From the NCBI GenBank assembly GCA_035221665.1, contig CM069142.1, positions 5,890,001 to 5,954,000 on the forward strand: 64,000 bases of DNA, in the 5' to 3' direction. Below the pieces are notes generated by a model. It worked only from the letters and a program-made list of their open reading frames with translations. It made no database searches and was not told the origin of the DNA. Source of the DNA: Okamejei kenojei (lineage: Eukaryota). Below are positions 13,385-46,658 of this stretch, in pieces (position 1 is the stretch's first letter; each line of letters starts with the position of its first letter). A program made the translations under genes and the position numbers.

Positions 13385-14082
13385 GGAAACGAGGAACTGC
13401 AAATGCTGGAACCTTGGCCAAACACATAGTGCTGGACAATGTCAGCAGGTCAGGCAGCATCTGTGGAGGGGTCGTTCCAGTGGATACACAATGGATGTTT
13501 CGGGTTGGGACCCCTCTTCAGACTAATGGAGTAGGGGGAAAGAAAGCTGGAAAAGAAATGTGGGCACAGGCAAAGCCTGGCAAGTGATAGGTGGATACAG
13601 ATGAGGATGGCGATTGGTAAACAGGTGGTAGTAAGTGACAAAGGCTGGAGGTGAATAGGAGACAAAAAGGTGTCAGATCAGTAGAGGAAAGGAGAAGTGA
13701 AATGTAAAGCTAGAGGGAGGGCTTGTGGGTGGAATGGGGAGGGGAAATAAAAGAGAAATGTGGGACTAGAGGATGGAAGATGAGTGCATGGAGAAGGGGA
13801 AAGGAGATGGGCGACTGGTGAGGTGGGAGATGGTGGGCTAATGTGTGCACACCAGGGTGGGCTACAGAGGAATGACAAGGGGGTAGGCATTGTTTGACAT
13901 TGAAGAAATCAATCTTCATCGCCTGTACTGTCAGAGGGAAAAAAGGTGGAAAACCAACTGAAGAAGGGTTTCGGCCCGAAACGTTGCCTATTTATTTCGC
14001 TCCATAGATGCATAGACACTGAGTTTCTCCAGCACTTTTGTCTACCTTCGATTTTCCAGCATCTGCAGTTCCTTCTTAAACA
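13385..14082. mobile_element. Penelope-like 3' tail (minus) followed by a plus-strand pLTR-type repeat carrying a minimal hammerhead motif
   Basis: CTGAAGA-stem-GAAAC motifs at ~13497-13522 (minus) and 13958-13985 (plus); same tail as the GIY-YIG-bearing copies. Confidence 0.7.
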
Positions 14083-26046: not shown

Positions 26047-27035
26047 TTAAAGAAGGAACTGCAGATGCTGGAGAATCGAGGGTTACACAAAAAGCTGGAG
26101 AAACTCAGCGGGTGCAGCAGCATCTAAGGAGCGAAGGAGATAGGCGACGTTTCGGGTCGAGACCCTTCTTCAGACTGGTCAGGGATCAGGGAAACGAGAG
26201 ATATAGACGGTGATGTGGAGAGATAAAGAACAATGAATGAAAGATATGCAAAGCTGTTTGTGGTGTGAAAATGAGAAGCTGGTGCGACTGGGGTGGGGGA
26301 GGGAGATGGAGATAGAGGGAATGCCAGGGCCCGAGGGATGAGGGAGAGGTGGAAGGGGAGGAGACAGCAAGGGTTAACAGAATTGAGAAAATTCAATGTT
26401 CAAGCCCAGAGGATGCAGACTCCCCAAGCGGAATATGAGATGCTGTTCCTCCAACTTGCGGTGTTGCTCACTCTGGCCGTGGAGGAGGCCCAGGACCGAG
26501 AGGTCGGATACAGAATGGGAGGGAGAGTTGAAGTGCTGAGCCACCGGGAGGTCGGGTTGGTTTTTGCGGACCGAGCGGAGGTGTTCGGCGAAACGATCGC
26601 CAAGCCTCCGCTTGGTCTCGCCGATATAGATCATCTGGCACCTGGAGCAGCGGATGCAGTAGATGAGGTTGGAGGAGGTGCAGGTGAACCTCTGTCGGAC
26701 CTGGAAGGACTGCTTGGGTCCCTGAAAGGAGTGGAGGGGGGAGGTGAAGGGACAAGTGTAGCATTTCTTGTGGTCTCCCTCCCCCACCCTAGTCGCAATA
26801 GCTTCTCATTTTCACACCACAAACAGCTTACAATGGCTTGTTCCCTTTATCATCGATACTTTTTTGCATATCTTTCATTCATTGTTCTTTATCTCTCCAC
26901 ATCACCGTCTATATCTCTCGTTTCCCTGATCCCTGACCAGTCTGAAGAAGGGTCTCGACCCGAAACGTCGTCCATCTCCTTCGCTCCTTAGATGCTGCTG
27001 CACCCGATGAGTTTCTCCAGCCTTTTGTGTCTCCG
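26047..27035 (-). mobile_element. Penelope-like element with GIY-YIG fragment and inverted pLTRs
   Basis: Minus ORF CTSSNLIYCIRCSRCQMIYIGETKRRLGDRFAEH...LNIEF; ~26085-26305 is inverted relative to ~26775-27030; TSD CTGTTGAACGTTG. Confidence 0.9.
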
Positions 27036-30739: not shown

Positions 30740-30937
30740 TTTCAGGTAGTCCCTGCTTTCTCCTCCCCTTCCCAGCTCTCCCTCAGCCCACTGTCTCCGC
30801 CTCTTCCTTTCCTCTTCCCACCCCCCACCACCCTCACATCAGTCTGAAGAAGGGTCTCGACCCGAAACGTTGCCCATTTCCTTTGCTCCATAGATGCTGC
30901 CTCACCTGCTGAGTTTCTCCAGCACTTTTGTCTGCCT
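30740..30937 (+). mobile_element. Penelope-type tail/pLTR with minimal hammerhead motif
   Basis: CTGAAGAAGGGTCTCGACCCGAAACGTT at 30844-30871. Confidence 0.75.
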
Positions 30938-35379: not shown

Positions 35380-36035
35380 GATGTTTCCACCAGTGGGAGA
35401 GTCAAGGAACAGAGGGCTTGGCGTCAGAATAAAAGACATATCTTTAGATCGGAGATAAGGAGGAATATCTTTAGCCAGAGGGTGGTGAATCTGTGAATTC
35501 ACTGCCACAGATGGCAGTGGAGGCCATGTCTTTCGGTATTTTTAAAGCAGAGATTGGTTGGTTCTTGATTAGTGTGTATCAAAGGTTATGGGTAGAATGG
35601 GGTTAAGAATGGAGAATAGATCAGCCATGAATGGCCTAATTCTGCTCCTATGTCTTATAGAAACATATACAATTATAAAAGGACTGGACAGGCTAGATGC
35701 AGGAAAAATGTTCCCAATGTTGGGCGAGAACCAGGGGCCACAGACTTAGAATAAAGGGGAGGCCATTTAAGACTGAGGTGAGAAAAAACTTTTTCACTCA
35801 GAGAGTTGTGAATTTGTGGAATTCCCTGCCACAGAGGGCAGTGGAGGCCAAATCACTGGATGGATTTAAGAGATAGTTAGATAGAGTTCTAGGGGCTGGT
35901 GGAATCAAGGGATATGGGGAGAAGGCAAGCACGGGTTATTGATTGGGGATGATCAGCCATGATCACAATGAATGGCGGTGCTGGCTCGAAGGGCCGAATG
36001 GCCTCCTCCTGCACATATTTTCTATGTTTCTATGT
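35380..36035 (+). mobile_element. Two tandem CR1 3' fragments
   Basis: CR1 3'UTR tails ending at ~35655 and ~36033. Confidence 0.85.
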
Positions 36036-36176
36036 TATGGAGGGATCCAGGTGGATCAAGGCGGACAAAACCAATGGGTATGTGTAGGATGTGCTGGCAG
36101 ATTGAAACAGAGAATGGACCGTGAATAAAGGAGGGCAGGATTTCTTGAGAAATTGTTCCTCAGAGTGAGGAGAAGT

Positions 36177-36235
<59 letters not shown>

Positions 36236-36606
36236 CAAAAACAGAGGGCATACATTTAAAATGTGAGGTGCAAGATTTAATGGGAATCTGAGGGGTGATC
36301 TTTATCACATGGAGAGAGGTGGGGTATAAAGAATGAGCTGCCAGAGGAAGTCGTTGAGGCAGGTATAATATCAACATTGAAAAGCCACTTGGACAAAGAC
36401 ATGGATAGGAAAAGTTGAGAGGGATAAGTGCAAATGAGACTAGCTGAAGGGTCGTATGATTCTATACATGTTTTCTGAGCTGCTAAATATTTCCATCAGC
36501 TGCAGTGTTTTACTTTCGTAAAGATCTTTCTTGCCTTTATTGCAAGTAAGGGAGTACAAAACCAAAAAGCTTTGGTGCCAATATGCAGGATTTTAAGACC
36601 ACACTT

Positions 36607-37349
36607 ATAACCATATAACCATATAACAATTACAGCACGGAAACAGGCCCTCTCGGCCCTTCCAGTCCGTGCCGACCATTTGTTTTCCCCTAGTCCCATC
36701 TACCTGCACTCAGACCATACCCCTCCATTCCCTTCACGTCCATATACCTATCCACTTTACTCTTAAATGTTAAAATCGATCCTGCCTCCACCACTTCTGC
36801 TGGAAGCTCATTCCACACAGCCACCACCCTCTGAGTAAAGAAGTTCCCCCTCACGTTACCCCTAAACTTCTGTCCCTTAATTCTCATGTCATGCCCTCTT
36901 GTTTGAATCTTCCCTACCCTCAATGGGAAAAACGTATCCACGTCAACTCTGTCTATCCCTTTCATCATTTTAAAGACCTCAATCAAGTCCCCCCTTAACC
37001 TTCTGCGCTCCAAAGAATAAAGACCTAACTTGTTCAACCTTTCTCTGTAACATAGTTGCTGGAACCCTGGCAACATTCTAGTAAATCTCCTCTGTACTCT
37101 CTATTTTGTTGACATCCTTCCTATAACTAGGCGACCAAAATTGTACACCATACTCCAGAATTGGTCTTACCAATGCCTTGTACAATTTTAACATTACTTC
37201 CCTACTCCTATATTCAATGCTCTGATTTATAAAGGCCAGCACACCAAAGGCTTTCTTTACCACCCTATCTACATGCGATTCCACCTTCAGGGAACTATGC
37301 ACAGTTATTCCTAGATCCCTCTGTTCCACAGCATTCCTCAATTCCCTAC
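36607..37349 (-). mobile_element. 5'-truncated CR1, near-identical to 8322-9035
   Basis: Same translated motifs and ATAACC-type tail. Confidence 0.92.
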
Positions 37350-38069
37350 AACTTATAGAGTATTGTAAAGTCAAAATCTTGCAAACGCTGCCTTCGAAGC
37401 AGTGTGGGTTTACTAGATTGTTCCTGGGTCCGGTTTTCTTGTGAGGAAACATTTTGCTGCTTCATCTGTTTGCTCGTACGCAGAAGAATTGGAGGTGATA
37501 TTATGAAACGCAATCGAACCTAATTGTCTTGCTGCGGGAAGATGCTGAAAGAATGATGGGTCATTCTTTTTACACTTAAAACCTTGAATAGGTCAGTGTG
37601 GATACAGTTTCTTAACATTGACACAGATGTTTAAACACAAAAAGTATGAATATCACCGTAAGTCAGGCAAACTGCACATTTCTGAGCAACAATGTCTGAA
37701 CACCATATGCTGTTTTGCAGAATGTTCACTGATTTACTGATATCCACAGATACAAGGTAAATAATGCTACATGGTGACTTTTCTTTCAATTAAAATTAAA
37801 GAAAATTAAAGATTACATTAGGCAGTCCCAAACCTACACTCATGTCAACTGCGCTGGGTGTGTCCACTAACGTCAACATCAAATGTCTGGCTGCTGTGGT
37901 CATGGTTTTGAAACTTGCCTTGGAGTTCCTCCCAGTGGCTGCTTACAGAAACTGCTAGATCAGTGGCAGTGAGTGAAGCCGAGATTGTAGACATCCGTGC
38001 AAGCAGTGAGGAACAAGAACGGTGGAAGTCTTGCTTGCAGCAGCATCACACGTACATACACTTAGATAA

Positions 38070-38600
38070 CACACACACAAACATCAATGATACAAAACAT
38101 GAAAAAAACTGCAAAAGGCAAGACAGTGGTGCAAAAACACAACTAGAAATGAGTCCATGGGGGTGCAAGAGATGGTCCCTAGTGTTCTTGTCCTAAGGTA
38201 GGATTAGGTTTGGGCAAGTCAGTTCAAGAGCCTGATGGTTGTAGGATGGTTGACGGTTCTGGACCCCGGTTGACTGGGACTTCAGGCATCTGGACGTCCT
38301 GTCCTACTGTAGCAGTGAGGAGAGGGCACGGCCTGGATGATGGGATTCCCTCATGATAGATGCCGTCTTCCTGATGCCGCTGATTTTGATGGTGGGGGGG
38401 GGGGAGTCCACCCTTCTCCACAATGTCTTGTGCTCCTGTGTGTTGGAGTTGCCCGTAATAGCCCATGATGCAGCCAGTCAAGATACTTTCAACAGTGCAC
38501 CTGTAGAGGTTTGTTAGAGCATTCGGTGACATTGTCAAATCTCTTCAAAGTTCTTGGAAAGTCGACATGCTGGCGTGCCTTCATCCTGATCACATGCTGG
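38070..38600 (-). mobile_element. Rex1/Babar LINE 3' fragment
   Basis: LTNLYRCTVESILTGCI motif. Confidence 0.75.
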
Positions 38601-38859
38601 GTCTCGAGACATTGCTGGACAGGAATTTCTAGCAGCCCCTGCAGAGTTGATTTGAAACGTGCCATGTGACCATCTTCAGCTGCTCTGCCTGTGACATAAG
38701 TTGACAAGCAATTACAAATGGGCAGATCTGAGTGCTGGGACCCGGAGAGGTCTATGAAATGGAGCTAACCCATTGAAAAGATTCAGGCTGGGAGTTGTTC
38801 ACCTGAGAAACATTTTGATCACTTAGGCCTGTCTAAATTTGCTGATACAAATAACAGTG

Positions 38860-40255
38860 TGGTTTCAGTTGAACAATCCCTGTTCCAGGCGTACACTGGC
38901 CCTATCTCCGTTACATTGATGACAGCATCGGTGCTCCCTCCTGCACCCATGCAGAACGCATTGACTTCACCAACTTCACCACCAATCTTCATCCTCTGTG
39001 CTCAAATTTACTTGGACCATCTCCGACATCTCCCTCCCCTTTCTTGATCTCAGTCTCCATAACAAGAAATAGACCATTGACTGACGTCTATTACAAGCCC
39101 ACTGACTCCCACAACTTCCTCGACTACACTTCTTCCCACCCTGCTTCCTGCAACGATTATATCCCCTACTCCCAATTCCTCCGTCTACGCCGCATCTGCG
39201 CCCAAGATGAGGAGTTCCATACCAGAACATCCAAGATGTCCTCATTCTTTAGGGAATGGGAATTCACCTCTCCCATCATAGATGAGGTCCTCATTCATGT
39301 CTCCTCAGTACCCCACAGCTCTGCCCTTGCTACCACTTCCCCTAGTTGGAACAGAGACAGAGTCCCCTAGTCGTTATCCCATTAGTCATCACATACAACA
39401 CATGATCCTACAAAATCTCTGCCACGTCCAATGGGATCCCACCACTGGCCGCATTTTCCCATCTCCACCCCTTTCCGTCTTCCGCAGAGACCGTTCCCTC
39501 CGCAACTCCCTGGTCAACTCATCCCTTCCCACCCAAACCACCCCCTCCCCAGGTACCTTCCCCTGCAACCGCAGAAGATGTAACACCTGTCCCTATACCT
39601 CCTCCCTCGACTCTGTCCAGGGACACTGACTGTCCTTTCAAGTTAGGCAGAGGTTCACTTGCACCTCCTCCAACCTCATCTACTGTATCCGTTGTTCAAG
39701 ATGTGGACTCTTATACATCGGCGAGTCCAAACGCAGACTGGACGATCGTTTTGCGGAACACCTTCGCTCAGCCCGCCAGAACCAACCTGATCCCTCGGTT
39801 GCTGGACACTTTAATTCTCCTTCCCACTCCCACACAGACCTTTCTGTCCTGGGTCTCCTCCGTTGACAGAATGAGGCTAAATGCAAATTGGAGGAACAGC
39901 ATCTCATATTTCGCTTGGGCAGCTTACAGCCCAGTGGTATGAATATTGATTTCTCTCACTTCAGGTATCCCCGGCATTCCCTCTCTCTCTGTCCCTCCCC
40001 CACCCAAGTCACAGTAGCTTCTCATTTTCACCCGACAAACAGCTAACAATGGCCTGTTTCCTTTATCATCTTTACTTTTTTGCATATCTTTCATTCATTG
40101 TTCTTTATCTCTCCACATCACCATCTGTATCTCTAATTTCCCTTATCCCATACCAATCTGAGGAAGGGTCTCGACTCAAAAGGTCACCCATTCCTTCTCT
40201 CCAGAGATGCTGCCGGTCCCGCTGAGTTATTCTGGCTTTTTGTGTTTATCTTCAA
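38860..40255 (+). mobile_element. Penelope-like element (RT C-terminus, GIY-YIG, pLTR tail), frameshifted
   Basis: TDVYYKPTDSH...IPYSQFLRLRRIC; CNRRRCNTC; LYIGESKR. Confidence 0.92.
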
Positions 40256-40285
40256 TCATCACCTCCCTGTTTTGCTCTCTTTCAG

Positions 40286-40330
40286 AATGAAAGGATGAAT
40301 GCTGCTGCTGCCACCAGTGACACCTATTCT
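40286..40330 (+). CDS. CD247: CD3 zeta exon 5
   Basis: Strong pyrimidine tract TTTCAG| and |GTAAGT, 45 nt; NERMNAAAATSDTYS supplies the first Tyr of ITAM2. Confidence 0.88.
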
Positions 40331-42286
40331 GTAAGTATGGCTTAAACTTCAGGTTTTTTTGGAAGCAAAGCGTGCTTTGGTCATTAATATTGGTTGAAGG
40401 GAGGGGGAAATTAAAAGTTTGTGCTGGGTAAATGCCAAACGATGTACTGAGCATGCAGAGAGTCATGTGCTGTCAAACCGCGATCAACTTGGAATTACTG
40501 GTCTTCTTCTGAGTGGTAAGACTCCAACAGCAGGAGATGCATTTACCACCCAACCCCAACTGTGTGCTTGAAATTTGACCAATAGCTGTGTGGTATGTAT
40601 TCTGCTGCAGAATCTCTTGCTGCTACATGGTCCTTGTGTGGGTCAGACAAGACTATTCAACATAAGGAACTTATGCAGCCTTCTCCAGAAACAAGTGGGA
40701 AATGTGGAAATTAGTTTTGTCTATTATTGGGATTTGTGATTACAAACAAGTCATCCACAATGTATAGATAAATGATATAACACTTATTACAAGTTAAAGT
40801 CCCGCAAAGTCTGATTAGAGATAGTTTGAGATAGATGGGAGGTCAGGACCATTCTCTAGTTAGTGCGAGGACTTGTTATCTTGTTCCACAGCCCTTCTGC
40901 TTGAAGGAAGACTTGCGTCCACTCCGGGTATGGGATGGCTGGTGAGATGAGTGTGGGATCGGCAGAGCAGGAGGTACTGGATGGAGCAGGTGAGGTGGTG
41001 CACTCCTCCGCCAATCTAATTGTTGGCCAGAGATTGCCATCAGTGGGTGAGAGTCCAATACTTTGAGGTATCTACCTAAAGTCGTGCATGGGGTAACCAT
41101 ACAGCCGTTGGTGGAAAAACATTACCTGTATTGTGTTTGAGCTCTTGATCCTCCAATACTTTCCTTCAGGACTGCCAAATTGAGTGCTGGTACACAGAAA
41201 CAAAAGATAAAATGTGATCATTGACACTTGCCTTCAATGAGGGCTGGCTCTGGAGATCACAAAAGTGGTCATGGTTTCTAAGTTTGTAGACACTTGGGGA
41301 AGATGACTGTTAGTTTGTATCGAACACGTCAATTATTACTTTGAGGTGCCCTGGGATTGCATGCTTTGCTCATCACAGTAATAAGGCTGGAACGTGACCA
41401 TGGTTTTGAAGTGGATTTGAAGTAGGCGGAACAGTTTCATTATTTCTTCAATAGATTAGCCCTAACGCAAAGAAACTTATTCGGGGTGATGTGTATTATT
41501 TGGCAACATACTCTGATAAAAATGTTGGATGAACACACTAACCTTCCTTGGACCCAGTCTGCATACAATTTTGTTTGAAGTTTTTAAGCCAAATTGTGTA
41601 ATTCTTAACTGTTAATTAAGTTTGTAGATTTTAAAAGGTGCATTGGTTGTTGCTGCTACTCCCAACCTTTCTGTTGGAAGTTGCTGCGGAGTAAACATGG
41701 TGTCCATTGTGCCTCTCGATAAACAGAATTCACAATAATGTAGGAAGCAGTTCTTGTGCCTGTTGGCAACAGGTCTACTGAGTGCGGGGCTGAAGAGCGG
41801 GCGTTGGTGAAGGAATAGAAACTTCTTGTCAGGGTTTGCAAACCATCTTCGGATGGTCAGATGGGGAAAATCTGAGGCACAATTAAATTTTAATTAATTG
41901 TTCTCCCAATCACAAAAACATGTGCAGAGTAAGAACATTGTCCTATAAATCCTAACATTAGTAATCTTGGTATAATGAGCTTCCAGGTTTTAGTCTGGTG
42001 GCATACTAAAAAGTACTGATTTTAGAAAAAAAAACAATTTAAGACAGAAACTGAGCAGAATGAATTAAATTTTGCAGAACAAACAAGCTTATGCTTCTTG
42101 TTCAGTTCTCTTGCTGTTTTGGTCGCATAACAGCACTGACAGATAAAGGAATCTAAATCATCAGCTTAACGAAGGCTCCCAATTCAAAGCGTTTTCAGTC
42201 CATTCCCTTCACAGATCCTCCAGCTCTTTCTTTTTGCTGTAAATTAAATGTATTTTTACTCATGGTGAATTTTACTTTGTTTACAG

Positions 42287-42343
42287 AAACTGAATGCCAA
42301 GACAAGAAATGAAGCTTATGGCGAACTGAAACCAACTCAACAG
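42287..42343 (+). CDS. CD247: CD3 zeta exon 6
   Basis: TTACAG|...CAG|GTACAG, 57 nt; KLNAKTRNEAYGELKPTQQ completes ITAM2 YSKL-x8-YGEL. Confidence 0.92.
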
Positions 42344-42449
42344 GTACAGTGAACATGACCTGATTCATCAGTCAATTACTGTAACTTCCTGTAAATAAAC
42401 AGCTCCAAATTTCATTGATTCTGGCTGTAGCGATATGTTCAGGTCACAT

Positions 42450-42765
42450 AATGAAATGCTCGGAGGAGGAGGAAGAGGTGCAGCTCACAGGCCTTGAACC
42501 TGGTGAGATGCATGAGGAGCCCGGCCGGGAGTCACCCCACAGAGCCCAGTCCCTCCATGCACTAGAGTCTCCCAACCCCTGCAGAGTAGTTATTAAGATG
42601 GCTGATCCGTGGGCGGTTGCTGCTGGGACGCAAGTCGGGGCCTGATCAACCCCGGCTGGGTCGCCTGGGCGAGGGTGTCTGATGTTGTGAGACCCGAAAC
42701 ACCCGATGACCCCAGGTCACATCACTGAGGATGCGTCCCAGCGCATCTAGAAGATGTATATTTTT
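42450..42765 (+). mobile_element. Internally deleted Hero-like (R2-group) non-LTR retroelement
   Basis: MKC...EPGEMHEEPGRESPHRAQSLH resembles the Hero ORF N-terminal region and IKMADPWAVAAGTQVGA* its C-terminus, followed by a structured 3'UTR. Family assignment is from memory of fish Hero elements. Confidence 0.7.
42618..42745 (+). ncRNA. Candidate permuted hammerhead ribozyme with kink-turn
   Basis: CUGAGGA 42725-31, GAAA 42696-99, GUC 42677-79, plus six mutually compatible helices (see findings). Confidence 0.65.
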
Positions 42766-43150
42766 CACACCCTGTATGAACTAAGCAAACTGAATGTCCA
42801 CCAAGGGCATAAATCTGAAGCAAATGTATGCTTTGGTGAGTAACGAAATAAATAAATAAAAGCCATTTTGTCAGATGGATGAATATTGCACTTCATAACT
42901 AGTCTGTAATATTAGATAATTTCCCATGGAGATATGTGCATCCACTGTTAATATTGTCACTGTCTAAAGATCACAACAAAGCAGCTCAGGGTAGATATTG
43001 CAGGGACCTTGACATTCTGATAGGTCCATGTCAAACAGGGTGCTGCACGTGAATAAAAATCAGAAGAACTTACTGCAGTTTCCAGAGATGTGTACCTGAT
43101 TAACATGTATTATAGAAATAAATTAACTTGCATATTTTAATACCCCACAG

Positions 43151-43186
43151 AAACGAAGAGGCAAAGGAGGGAATGACATCTATCAG
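43151..43186 (+). CDS. CD247: CD3 zeta exon 7
   Basis: CCCACAG|...CAG|GTAGGA, 36 nt; KRRGKGGNDIYQ versus human RRRGKGHDGLYQ. Confidence 0.95.
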
Positions 43187-43593
43187 GTAGGAGAGAAGCG
43201 AGAGCGGTCTTCTTCAACATCTACTACCCACATTAAACCAGTGTCCTGCTGCTTGTATCCTCACTCAATCCACACCTTGCTTCAACAGTGGCTTCAATTT
43301 TAACATGTTTTTAGAAAATAGAACATTACAATAAAGGAACAGGTCCAACAGCCCACGATGTCCATGGCAAGTATGATGCCAAGTTTAACTAACCTCCTCT
43401 GCCTGCACAAGATCCATATCTGCCTGCCTGTGTAAAAGCCTCAAATGCCCCTAACGTATCTGCCTCCACACCACCCCTGGCAGCGCGTTCCAGGCACTCA
43501 CCACACCATGTCAAAAACACTTGTTCCGCACACTTTATTTAAACTTTGCCCTCTCACTTTAAAGCTATGGCCTTTACTCTTTGACATTTCCAC

Positions 43594-45599
43594 CAAAGAT
43601 CCTACAGCGAGCAAGATAGTCCACTCCTGCTAACTCCAATGGGCTGACGTGTAGTACGCAACGGAGCGGAACGCGAGCCTTTTCTTCGGCCATTTCAGTA
43701 ACCTGACCCGACTTTGTACATCCCTCTCGCAGTGCAATCAACGTTGCGGGGGAACAGTTTGTGTTAATAAATTATAATTCTGTTAATTTTATTCTTTTAA
43801 TGTTATTTTTAAATTGTTTTTTTTTTAATGTTTAAAAAATATATTTTTTAATAGCTCATGTGCTGTTTTATTCAGCGACCATACAACTGATTAGATTGTG
43901 TAGGAAAGAACACACATGCATGAATGCGATATAGATGTATATAATCATATAACACACACACACACACATACATATTTCTCCAGATTTTTATATATAATGA
44001 TAAACTTTATTTCGGATTCAAGACCCAGACAAGGGACAACATTACATTAAAATACATTGCAAACCTCCCCGCAACTTTACCCTGACATCTCAGCCGTGCT
44101 GATCCGGGCCAGACTTCCTACACGCTGTGGAAGGAACATAGGCATATTTTTGCTTTTTATTGTGAGGCAGAGAGGCAGAAAGAAAATAAGATTTTTACTA
44201 AAGATCTTTGATTTTTACTCTCTACTCTTCCTCCCACCCTGCTTCCTGTCAGGACTCCATCCCCTATTCCTCCGCCTAAACCGCATCTGCTCCCAGGATG
44301 AGGTGTTCCACACCAGGTCATCACAAATGGCCTCATTCTTCAGAGAACGGGGATTCCCCTCCCCCACTATTGATGAGGCTCGCACCAGGGTCTCCTCCAT
44401 ACCCCGCAACACTGCCCTCTCTCCCCATTCCCCCATTCGCAAACAGGGCAGAGTCCCCCTGGTCCTCACCTTTCACCCCACCAGCTGGCAAATACAACAC
44501 ATAGTCCTCCACCAGTTTCGCCACCTCCAACGTGACCCCTCCACTCGCCACATCTTCCCATCTCCCCCCCCCCCCCCCCCCCCCCGTCTGCCTTCCGCAA
44601 AGACCGCTCCCTCCGCAACTCCCTTGTCAATTCTTCCCTTCCCTCCCGCTCTACCCCTTCCCCGGGCACTTTCCCTTGCAACCGCAAGAAATGCTACACT
44701 TGTCCCTTCCCCCCCCCCTCCACTCCTTTCAGGGACCCAAGCAGTCCTTCCAGGTCCGACAGAGGTTCACCTGCACCTCCTCCAACCTCATCTACTGCAT
44801 CCGCTGCTCCAGATGCCAGATGATCTATATCGGTGAGACCAAGCGGAGGCTTGGCGATCGTTTCGCCGAACACCTCCGCTCGGTCCGCATTAACCAACCC
44901 GACCTCCCGGTGGCTCAGCACTTCAACTCCCCTCCCATTCCGTATCCGACCTCTCGGTCCTGGGCCTCCTCCACGGCCAGAGTGAGCAACACCGCAAGTT
45001 GGAGGAACAGCACCTCATATTCCACTTGGGGAGTCTGCATCCTCTGGGCTTGAACATTGAATTTCTCAATTCTGTTAACCCTTGCTGTCTCCTCCTCTTC
45101 CCACCTCTCCCTCAGCCCTCGGGCCCTGGCATTCCCTCTCTCTCTATCTCCCTCCCCCACCCTAGTTGCACCAGCTTCTCATTTTCACACCACAAACAGC
45201 TTACAATGGCTTGTTCCCTTTATCATTGATACTTTTTTGCATATCTTTCATTCATTGTTCTTTATCTCTCCACATCACCGTCTATATCTCTCGTTTCCCT
45301 GATCCCTGACCAGTCTGAAGAAGGATCTCGATCCGAAACGTCGCCTATCTCCTTCGCTCCTTAGATGCTGCTGCACCCGCTGAGTTTCTCCAGCCTTTTG
45401 TGTACCTTTGATTTTTACGAGGATGTTTCCGTAACCGGCTTCCGTCTGCGCACTTGTATCTTTGCTCCGCTACGGGATCTTTGGCGCGGAGACGGAAGCC
45501 GGTTACGGAAATGGGGCTGAAAATAACCCATGAATCTGCCCATGACCGTACTATGTCTTTTCCGTTGAGTGGGCTATCTTGCTCGCTATAGGATCTTTG
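43594..45599. mobile_element. Non-autonomous hAT-like DNA transposon
   Basis: ~33 bp TIRs CAAAGATCCTACAGCGAGCAAGATAGTCCACTC / GAGTGGGCTATCTTGCTCGCTATAGGATCTTTG; 8-bp flanks ATTTCCAC and GTTTCCAT. Confidence 0.75.
44219..45405 (+). mobile_element. Penelope-like insertion inside the hAT element
   Basis: GIY-YIG ORF 44532-45053; direct repeat CTTTGATTTTTAC at 44206-18 and 45406-18. Confidence 0.9.
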
Positions 45600-46658
45600 G
45601 TTTCCATCCTGGTAAAAAGGTTCTGACTGTCTAGCCTATCAATGCCACTCACAATTATATCCACTTCTATCAGTTCTTCCCTCAGCTTCTGACACTCCAC
45701 GGCAAACAATCCATGTTTGTCCACCCTCTCTCTCTAGCGCTAATATCCTCTAATCTAGGCAGCATTCTGGTCAACCTCTTCTGCACCCTCTCCAAAGCCT
45801 TCCTGTATGGGAGACCTGAACAATACTCCAAATGTTGAGTAACTAAAGACCTATAAAGCTGCAGCCAGATTCCTGCCTCATATATTCAATGCCCTGACCT
45901 ATGAAAGCATGCACACGTTACGTCTTCTTTACTACTTTCATCAAGCTATGGACTTAGACCACAAGCGTAGGAAGGAACTGCAGATGCTGGTTCTGTCTAT
46001 CTTTGACTTAATGCTGTTAAGGGTTTTGCCATTAACTGTACATTCCACCTCACAAAGTGCCCCACCTCACACTTACTCGAATTACATTTCATCTGCCATT
46101 TTTCTGTCCATTTCTGTAGCTGGTGCTGCATGCTGAACCCCGCTGCAAACATTGACAGCTTTCCTCACTGTCACAAACCCTCCTAATGTGAACCATCTTC
46201 AATCTCCCTACATTTGGCCCATCTTGCAAAGAATCTTTTTACTTCAACCAAGTGTTTAAGCTACATTTGCTAAAGTCTCCTTCTAAAGCTATTTACATCT
46301 CATAGATAAGTTGTTGAACATATCACAGACAAAACCCAGCAAAGGTTGACATTTTCTTGCATGCCTGGTTGGCTGGGAACCCGTGGGGAATACCTTTGAT
46401 CTCCATCTTCCATATCGATGAAGGATGGTTAAAAGACAAACACTGACTGAATTTCTGTTAATTTAGGAGGCAAACTGTCCACAGGAACTACACAATAGAT
46501 AATCAGCACATTATTATATCTTAACCACACCTGGAATACATGTTTTTTTTCCAGAAAGTCATATACAAGTTATACCTGCAGGGAAAAGTGTAGAATAGAA
46601 AAATACTTCCTTGTGATGCAGACATTTCGCTAACGATTTCAATGGAATTATTTTGCAG

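Follow-up and report, generated by a model that had tools for sequence, protein, structure and literature searches.

A predicted hammerhead ribozyme with a rearranged strand order in the tail of an R2-group (Hero-like) retrotransposon

The last ~150 bases of a widespread fish/chordate retrotransposon carry every conserved part of a hammerhead self-cleaving RNA, in a strand order that is close to, but not the same as, one first described in 2023 (Eckert et al., PMC10085705). We found this arrangement in a 64,000-nucleotide stretch of DNA from Okamejei kenojei (GCA_035221665.1, contig CM069142.1, positions 5,890,001 to 5,954,000, forward strand), referred to here as the window. In the literature that we could search, such an RNA has not been reported in an animal genome. 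On the basis of DNA sequence, we put the probability at about 0.5 that the module is a 3′-terminal cis-acting RNA built around a hammerhead active site that cuts between positions 42679 and 42680.

Results

The module carries a complete hammerhead core

We first examined whether the motifs and six helices proposed by the initial annotation are present in the sequence. All of them were found exactly where it had placed them. The core motifs are CTGAGGA (42725-31), GAAA (42696-99) and GTC (42677-79), and helices I, II and III, of 6, 5 and 6 Watson-Crick pairs, abut the core in exact register without a spacer, with a G10.1-C11.1 pair. The element copy and its module comprise the following parts, all on the (+) strand.

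42450..42769 (+): 5′-truncated copy of an RLE (R2-group, Hero-like) LINE; only this stretch is repeated in genomes
42622..42632 (+): 5′ strand of the outer closing helix, Ha (11 bp), pairing with 42732-42742
42633..42657 (+): hairpin Hb, 8 bp (42633-40 / 42650-57, with one G-U pair) and loop 42641-49, which holds the conserved UGAUCA and the stop codon of this copy's ORF, UGA at 42643-45
42658..42662 (+): stem II strand 10.1-10.5 (GGGUC), pairing with 42691-42695
42663..42669 (+): 5′ strand of the sixth helix, H6, pairing with 42711-42717 and tying the distal ends of stems I and II; its terminal G-U is not conserved
42670..42672 (+): non-bulged strand of the kink-turn, position 3n (C), then G2n and A1n
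42673..42678 (+): stem III strand 16.6-16.1, pairing with 42699-42704
42679..42680 (+): C17 and U1.1, with the predicted scissile bond between them
42680..42685 (+): stem I strand 1.1-1.6, pairing with 42719-42724
42686..42690 (+): 5-nt linker from the distal end of stem I to the distal end of stem II
42691..42704 (+): block G, stem II strand 11.5-11.1, then G12 A13 A14, then stem III strand 15.1-15.6
42705..42710 (+): bulged strand of the kink-turn, L1-L3 (GAU), G1b, A2b and 3b
42711..42717 (+): 3′ strand of H6
42719..42731 (+): first half of block C, stem I strand 2.6-2.1, then C3 U4 G5 A6 N7 G8 A9 (CUGAGGA), preceded by a 1-nt spacer at 42718
42732..42742 (+): 3′ strand of Ha, starting directly after A9
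42743..42757 (+): terminal hairpin Hc (4-5 bp), just before the element's 3′ end
42758..42769 (+): 3′ tail of the element

The strand order is thus the stem II 10.x strand and H6, the S block (42673-85), the 5-nt linker, the G block, the kink-turn, the second H6 strand, and finally the stem I 2.x strand with CUGANGA. This pseudoknotted order fits none of types I-III, as the initial annotation had proposed. A canonical hammerhead cannot be assembled from the same motifs, since there is no GAAA downstream of CUGAGGA in register. Block C is interrupted in that A9 (42731) is followed by Ha and G10.1 (42658) is preceded by Hb; this break is bridged by a gap-free four-way junction. On the other side, a consensus kink-turn joins stem III to H6. 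Its C stem is stem III, closed by the C-G pair 42704/42673, its bulge is 42705-07, and the tandem sheared pairs are G42708-A42672 and A42709-G42671.

To estimate how often such an arrangement arises by chance, we wrote a descriptor that required CUGANGA, GAAA, U16.1-A15.1, non-G at position 17, G10.1-C11.1, helix I of at least 5 bp, helix II of at least 4 bp, helix III of at least 5 bp, and this strand order. It found exactly this site in the window and nothing on the other strand. By contrast, it gave 2 hits in 2,674 dinucleotide-shuffled windows (7.5e-4 per 64 kb), none as strong as the real one, and 1 hit in 257,857 shuffles of the local 321 nt. As this rate would still allow tens of chance hits per multi-gigabase genome, the case rests on the conservation pattern as well as on the motif.

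Searches with Rfam models gave no hit at E up to 10 in 36000-46000, or at the gathering score in the whole window, although this is expected for a permuted form. Plain folding gave a z-score of about -2.4, similar on both strands and hence not discriminating; nested folding cannot represent the model. The nested part of the model scores -58.9 kcal/mol, and with stems I and II added it is comparable to the -65.0 kcal/mol nested optimum.

The module is the 3′ terminus of an R2-group LINE

We then addressed the genomic context, using the depth profile and loose ends of ~1,140 raw reads and of contigs. The repeated element ends at about 42763-42769, and copies diverge into unrelated flanks at 42759-42770, where the consensus has low agreement. 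The module is therefore the extreme 3′ end of the element. A depth of about 550-640 reads from ~3% of one run points to roughly 1,000 copies per genome in a related genome. Homologues occur in metagenome contigs and in translated copies, some of them from named teleost genomes. Homologous contigs carry RT and RLE ORFs directly upstream, with RVT_1 and zf-RVT hits, a CCHC zinc knuckle and invariant RPD...ELTVPWE...K..KY motifs, and R2 proteins are the closest among solved structures. These features were seen in homologues and not in the truncated copy of the window. A protein search with the window's 76-aa ORF returned nothing, no other copy was found in the window, a scan of genome contigs gave only two short contaminant contigs, both cut before the 3′ end, and scans of viral contigs gave nothing. 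A simple ITAM pattern search, made because the initial annotation had placed the element in CD247 intron 6, found nothing usable.

The ORF of the element ends inside the module. The stop is the UGA in the Hb loop in this copy or, in another sub-family, the UGA directly after C17, so that coding extends up to 42645 or 42682, respectively. The module stays conserved although three different reading frames cross it, so the constraint acts on the RNA.

Sequence variation fits a hammerhead with a kink-turn

Among the reads, variants at 5% or more fall in the linker (42688 T>A at 23% and 42689 G>A at 22% in one genome), kink-turn L1 (42705, which occurs as G, A and C, with 22-23% for each of the two alternatives), position 3n (42670) and the spacer (42718, variable or deleted), or are G-U-compatible (42742). 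None is listed in the core or in helices I-III. N7 is G in the window, U in the homologous contigs L001, L002, L004 and L005, and C in contig L006, while the other six letters of CUGANGA are fixed in intact copies. We also read translations of copies in a non-coding frame, which reveal first and second codon letters but hide the partners of several changed helix III positions. In the 32 copies (25 database translations, six contigs and the window) whose position-17 codon is readable, it gives C in 19, A in 10 (nine Y codons plus one H codon that also changes U16.1), U in 2 and G in 1, a degenerate copy. Block G reads as RPETP in 30 of the 33 translated copies. The linker codon is V, E, A, K or Q, or is deleted; the kink-turn bulge codon is hypervariable, whereas the next codon stays D or E, which keeps GA.

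The peripheral helices show compensatory changes. Ha has four sequence versions, all fully complementary; Hb pair 42636-42654 occurs as C-G, U-A or U-G; H6 pair 42668-42712 changes from G-C to A-U in L006 and L001; and Hc is CATC/GATG in the window, L006 and L004 but CACC/GGTG in L003 and L005. By contrast, helices I-III show only G-U wobbles in the seven DNA sequences (a single U-G in the GGGUC strand of stem II), and the formal covariation score of the whole model does not exceed that of shuffles. This comparison is limited in that our search pattern fixed the S and G blocks in the six contigs, and that it lacked the DNA downstream of the homologous ORFs in Labeo, Dallia, Merluccius, Branchiostoma and Argopecten.

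Discussion

Given that all core nucleotides and abutting helices are in register and that the variable positions fit a hammerhead with a kink-turn, we infer that, once ribosomes have left, the module folds and cuts between 42679 and 42680. About 35 base pairs would hold the two products together, so the reaction is probably a cleavage/ligation equilibrium. Genomic copies are continuous across the site, so new copies must be made from the uncut or religated form. The same module probably serves as the recognition site of the reverse transcriptase for target-primed reverse transcription, as the pseudoknotted 3′ UTR element does in R2 (PMC12222951). Cleavage would then act as a switch on RNA fate. 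The initial annotation had suggested that the ribozyme may process the element's 3′ end, but this does not fit, as the predicted cut lies ~85-90 nt upstream of that end. A cut at this position would also destroy the retrotransposition template, leaving its selective benefit unclear. In addition, a break between A9 and G10.1, probably near the A9/G10.1 metal site, has not been shown to be tolerated, and Eckert et al. assumed that the blocks cannot be interrupted.

We do not rule out that the module is only the structure that the reverse transcriptase binds for priming, perhaps with a hammerhead-like fold inherited from a ribozyme, but without cleavage to any useful extent in the element's life cycle. 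We consider this less likely than the catalytic reading, although its position within ~25 nt of the terminus, the pseudoknotted element that R2 proteins recognize in the last ~67 nt of their 3′ UTR (PMC12222951), the continuity of genomic copies through the site and a possible disabling effect of the split at A9|G10.1 would all agree with it. Also, helices I-III keep their sequence while Ha changes freely, which suggests sequence-specific recognition and not mere pairing. However, a protein-binding scaffold has no evident need for every catalytic nucleotide in hammerhead register, and it does not predict the free N7, the non-G pattern at position 17 or the exact connectivity of a validated ribozyme class. 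Binding and catalysis are, moreover, not mutually exclusive.

It seems improbable that the hammerhead resemblance is a coincidence inside a real, conserved structured 3′ UTR with a different fold. Helices of 5-6 bp are easy to find in 60% G+C sequence, tens of relaxed-descriptor hits are expected in a multi-gigabase genome, helices I-III do not covary in our data, and GACCC occurs twice (42691-95 and 42708-12), such that 42658-62 has an alternative partner that the nested optimum uses. Nevertheless, only 1 in 257,857 local shuffles gives even a relaxed hit, the double change at 42668/42712 supports H6 and not the nested alternative, the variable positions (N7, position 17, the linker, L1-L3, 3b/3n and the spacer) coincide with free positions of hammerheads and kink-turns, and the architecture matches a validated ribozyme, SGC-1, segment by segment. 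A protein-coding or DNA-level origin of the conservation, which the overlap of the ORF with the 5′ part of the module might suggest, is very unlikely and already largely refuted: different sub-families read the same nucleotides in different frames, the non-coding 3′ half (42683-42757) is equally conserved, and Ha, Hb, H6 and Hc change by compensatory pairs.

More tentatively, an abundant chordate LINE family might carry a catalytically active hammerhead in a fourth permutation of the S-G-C ring, in which the kink-turn solves a geometric problem that Eckert et al. left open, namely how stem III reaches the helix joining stems I and II. The ribozyme could then work as a reversible cleavage/ligation switch inside the reverse transcriptase's own recognition site, coupled to translation termination because the stop codon lies inside the ribozyme. 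The non-circularly permuted hammerheads that we could trace come mainly from metatranscriptomes, with a single bacterial candidate. If this RNA cleaves, they would also exist in animal genomes at roughly a thousand copies per genome, and the three conserved blocks would not be indivisible, which widens the search space for hammerheads and for other ribozymes that covariance models of fixed topology miss. It would also raise the question of how an element tolerates, or uses, a cut inside its own priming structure. R2-group elements are being developed for gene insertion, so their 3′ recognition RNAs are of practical interest.

The initial annotation knew of no description of this structure, but the topology is not without precedent. 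The closest known RNAs are the validated type-SGC non-circularly permuted hammerheads (HRIMA-1 motif and variants; Eckert, Friedrich, Weinberg and Weinberg, NAR 2023, PMC10085705), which share the core nucleotides, the cyclic S-G-C block order, a short linker from stem I straight into stem II (3 nt there; 5 nt, or 2 nt in some copies, here), and a fourth helix of 6-7 bp that joins the other sides of stems I and II, with a 0-1 nt spacer to stem II and a 1-nt spacer to stem I. SGC-1, with a stem I of about 5 bp and a stem II of 5 bp, cleaves nearly to completion. In the published type the RNA ends lie between blocks, 5′ of S and 3′ of C, whereas here they open inside block C and are closed by Ha and Hb, and the former ends are joined through the kink-turn. 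The published examples come from metatranscriptomes, many found via association with hairpin ribozymes, and from RefSeq and metagenome searches, not from an animal LINE; their cleavage is proven, while here it is predicted. The kink-turn matches the Kt-7 type in its parts, with a bulge and a 3b/3n position that vary while GA is fixed; no kink-turn is mentioned for hammerheads in Eckert 2023 or in the other papers that we read.

The R2 3′ UTR recognition element (PMC12222951, PMC10499050) belongs to the same super-group of elements (RT, CCHC and RLE) and is likewise a compact, conserved, pseudoknotted RNA at the very 3′ end, although no hammerhead core has been described in R2 3′ UTRs. The classical hammerheads of Penelope-like elements and retrozymes (PMC4209133, PMC7229834) have the same catalytic core and are again carried by eukaryotic retroelements. 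Interestingly, the window also carries Penelope-type minimal hammerheads, whose stem II (GGGUC/GACCC) is identical to the one here. Those are type I (or III), nested three-way junctions in terminal repeats or tandem units, whereas the present module is pseudoknotted, permuted, single-copy per element and overlaps the end of the ORF of an RLE LINE. Finally, the HDV-like ribozymes at the 5′ ends of R2 and other LINEs (Eickbush 2010; Ruminski 2011) are also self-cleaving ribozymes built into non-LTR elements, but of a different class and location: they cut at their own 5′ edge and free the element's 5′ end, while the cut predicted here is internal to the 3′ module and frees nothing.

Sequence anatomy of the predicted hammerhead module

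We first verified the positions of the motifs and helices on the sequence, and every coordinate given in the initial annotation proved to be correct. The elements are as follows.

42725-31, CTGAGGA core motif
42696-99, GAAA core motif
42677-79, GTC cleavage triplet
42673-78/42699-704, helix III
42680-85/42719-24, helix I
42658-62/42691-95, helix II
42622-32/42732-42, an 11-bp outer helix, designated Ha
42633-40/42650-57, a hairpin, designated Hb
42663-69/42711-17, a sixth helix, designated H6

A9 is followed directly by Ha, Ha by Hb, and Hb by G10.1, so that the junction contains no unpaired nucleotide. The internal loop between helix III and H6 (CGA opposite GAUGAC) has the form of a kink-turn, in which the C stem is closed by C42704-G42673, the 3-nt bulge is 42705-07, and the sheared pairs are G42708-A42672 and A42709-G42671. 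The Hb loop (42641-42649) holds a palindrome, UGAUCA, that is conserved in all sub-families, including those that do not use its UGA as a stop codon. CUGAU in this loop repeats C17 and the start of stem I (42679-42683), so the loop could pair with the stem I partner (AUCA, 42721-24) or with the loop of another molecule; it could be a conformational switch or a dimerisation site.

To examine whether this arrangement could arise by chance, we wrote a descriptor for the strand order that required CUGANGA, GAAA, U16.1-A15.1, non-G at position 17, G10.1-C11.1, and minimum lengths of 5, 4 and 5 bp for helices I, II and III. The descriptor hit this site once in the window and nothing on the other strand. 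By contrast, it produced two hits in 2,674 dinucleotide-shuffled windows, neither of which was as strong as the real one, and one hit in 257,857 shuffles of the local 321 nt. As this rate (7.5e-4 per 64 kb) would still allow tens of relaxed chance hits in a multi-gigabase genome, one copy alone would not be convincing, and the case is carried by the conservation pattern.

The module lies at the 3′ end of an R2-group LINE

No long ORF lies upstream in the window. We aligned reads and contigs of four sequencing runs to 42350-42950 at 80% likeness and found that only 42450 to about 42763-42769 is repeated. The copy is therefore a 5′-truncated fragment, and the module lies within ~25 nt of the 3′ end of the element. 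Depth over the core was 550-640 reads from about 3% of one whole-genome run, which points to roughly a thousand copies in that genome.

A pattern search identified six homologous metagenome contigs (L001-L006). Directly upstream, they encode a reverse transcriptase (RVT_1) and a C-terminal domain with invariant RPD...ELTVPWE...K..KY motifs, which is a PD-(D/E)xK restriction-like endonuclease. Long relatives have RVT_1 plus the CCHC zf-RVT domain, and their best solved relatives are R2 proteins. The protein family has more than 4,900 clusters, with named members in teleosts, amphioxus and a scallop. Thus, on the evidence of these homologues, the element is an RLE LINE of the R2 group, while its assignment to Hero specifically is plausible. 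Two tiny scaffolds in bacterial genome assemblies, Thalassococcus profundi scaffold_92 (507 bp) and Alcanivorax profundi scaffold_221 (353 bp), encode 61-65% identical pieces of the endonuclease domain of this animal LINE and are most likely eukaryotic contamination of the assemblies.

In the window copy (42450-42600) and in L001 (871-1116, minus strand), the sequence just upstream of the module is not the endonuclease domain seen in L004 and L006, and about five in six copies in one genome have a different upstream sequence before 42592. This suggests deletion derivatives or several families that share one 3′ module.

The ORF of the element ends inside the module

The stop codon of the element always lies inside the RNA module, but in two different places and frames. 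In this copy and many others, the stop is the UGA in the Hb loop (42643-45), with protein tails ending ...AAGTQxGx. In another sub-family, the ORF runs in a different frame through Ha, Hb, II, H6 and III, and stops at the UGA directly after C17 (42680-42682; tails ...DQPRLGRPSEGV), where cleavage at the predicted site would remove the stop codon. Gene callers have also translated a third, non-coding frame across the whole module in many copies. The same nucleotides are conserved under different frames, and the 3′ half is non-coding. The constraint is therefore on the RNA.

Conservation follows the pattern expected of a hammerhead core with a kink-turn

We next examined variation among copies within one genome. 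Variants reaching 5% or more inside the module were 42688 T>A (23%) and 42689 G>A (22%), in the I-to-II linker; 42705 G>A (22%) and G>C (23%), at kink-turn L1; 42670 C>T, at kink-turn 3n; 42718 C>T (19%), the 1-nt spacer, which is deleted in some contigs; and 42742 C>T (56%), which keeps a G-U pair. None of these variants lies in the core or in helices I-III.

In the DNA alignment, N7 is G in the window, U in L001, L002, L004 and L005, and C in L006, whereas the other CUGANGA letters are fixed in intact copies. L004 has A9 changed to U, a change reported in functional ribozymes by Eckert et al. (PMC10085705). We then compared 33 rows in the module-spanning frame, comprising 26 database translations, the six contigs and the window. 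The position-17 codon is readable in 32 of them and gives C 19 times, A 10 times (nine Y codons plus one H codon that also changes U16.1), U twice, and G once in a degenerate copy. The G block (stem II strand, GAAA, stem III strand) reads as RPETP in 30 of the 33. The linker codon is V, E, A, K or Q, or is deleted, and the kink-turn bulge codon is hypervariable, while the next codon stays D or E, which keeps GA. This is the pattern expected of a hammerhead core with a kink-turn.

The peripheral helices show compensatory changes. Ha occurs in four versions that are each fully complementary: that of the window; that of L006, with G-C changed to A-U at 42630/42734; a 14-bp version seen as the 5′ strand in L002 and L003 and the 3′ strand in L005; and a version seen only as read overhangs, in 68 and 54 reads. 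Helices I, II and III, by contrast, show only G-U wobbles, and with seven partly truncated sequences the formal score of the whole model is not above shuffles. Our search pattern also fixed the S block (stem III strand, C17, stem I strand) and the G block, so their invariance in L001-L006 is not independent evidence; this is the main gap in the data. Of the other peripheral elements, Hb pair 42636-54 occurs as C-G, U-A and U-G, H6 pair 42668-42712 changes from G-C to A-U in L006 and L001, and a small terminal hairpin, designated Hc (42743-47/42753-57), alternates between CATC/GATG and CACC/GGTG.

Possible function of the module

Given this anatomy and its conservation, we infer that the RNA folds as a hammerhead and cuts between 42679 and 42680. 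An 80-nt contig of a possibly RNA-derived run (42680-42759) starts exactly at the first base after the predicted cut; however, contig ends reflect assembly-graph branch points, and position 42679 is polymorphic among copies, so this cannot be read as an RNA end. The initial annotation, whose interpretation is partly supported, had suggested that cleavage may process the 3′ end of the element. This role does not fit, as the cut lies ~85-90 nt inside the element, the two products would stay joined by about 35 base pairs, and genomic copies are continuous across the site, with no common indel there. New copies must therefore be made from uncut or religated RNA.

R2 proteins recognise a pseudoknotted element at the end of their 3′ UTR to begin reverse transcription (PMC12222951), and, by position, this module is the obvious counterpart. 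We favor the notion of a dual-purpose module, namely a recognition site for the reverse transcriptase whose core is a hammerhead in a cleavage/ligation equilibrium, which translating ribosomes would unfold until they terminate at the stop codon inside it. What the cut is used for is a tentative inference; it might separate spent from template RNA, or limit expression. The main alternative is that the module is only a protein-binding scaffold and does not cleave. We do not rule out a chance resemblance to the hammerhead, although this seems unlikely. A rough energy sum puts the pseudoknotted model on a par with the best nested fold: the nested part scores -58.9 kcal/mol, to which stems I and II add, and the nested optimum is -65.0 kcal/mol.

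Comparison with known hammerhead ribozymes

Penelope-type minimal hammerhead motifs (CUGAAGA, short stem II, GAAAC, GUC) lie inside dispersed repeats of the same window, with 3 exact pattern hits against 0 expected.

26942-26969 (+), exact hit
26146-26173 (-), exact hit
45315-45342 (+), exact hit
13954-14042, weaker copy near this position
30840-30928, weaker copy near this position

The 45315 copy has a compensatory stem II change (GGGUC/GACCC to GGAUC/GAUCC), but none of these motifs reaches any Rfam threshold. Their stem II and the 10-mer GACCCGAAAC are identical to those of the LINE module.

Although the initial annotation knew of no precedent for the permuted arrangement, there is one. 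Eckert et al. 2023 (PMC10085705) divided the hammerhead into blocks S, G and C, found natural non-circular permutations (type SGC and type CSG, with GCS doubtful), and validated them by cleavage mapping and by disrupt-and-rescue of four helices. In the literature we could search, we found no paper describing a hammerhead in a LINE 3′ end, or the permutation seen here, and the module, if cleavage is shown, would be of high interest to ribozyme and retrotransposon specialists. The SGC-1 of Eckert et al. reads, in order, stem III strand, C17, stem I strand, a 3-nt linker, stem II strand, GAAA, stem III strand, 2 nt, interaction-helix strand, 1 nt, stem I strand, CUGAUGA, stem II strand, 1 nt, and interaction-helix strand. 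The present RNA has the same segments, lengths and spacers, with H6 as the counterpart of the interaction helix, but it differs in two respects: the former 3′ and 5′ ends are joined through the kink-turn, and new ends are opened between A9 and G10.1 and are held by Ha and Hb. It is thus a further circular permutation of the S-G-C ring, with the break inside a block that the authors assumed could not be interrupted. Interestingly, the kink-turn sits exactly where they noted an unexplained geometric problem, in that stem III connects almost directly to the interaction helix.
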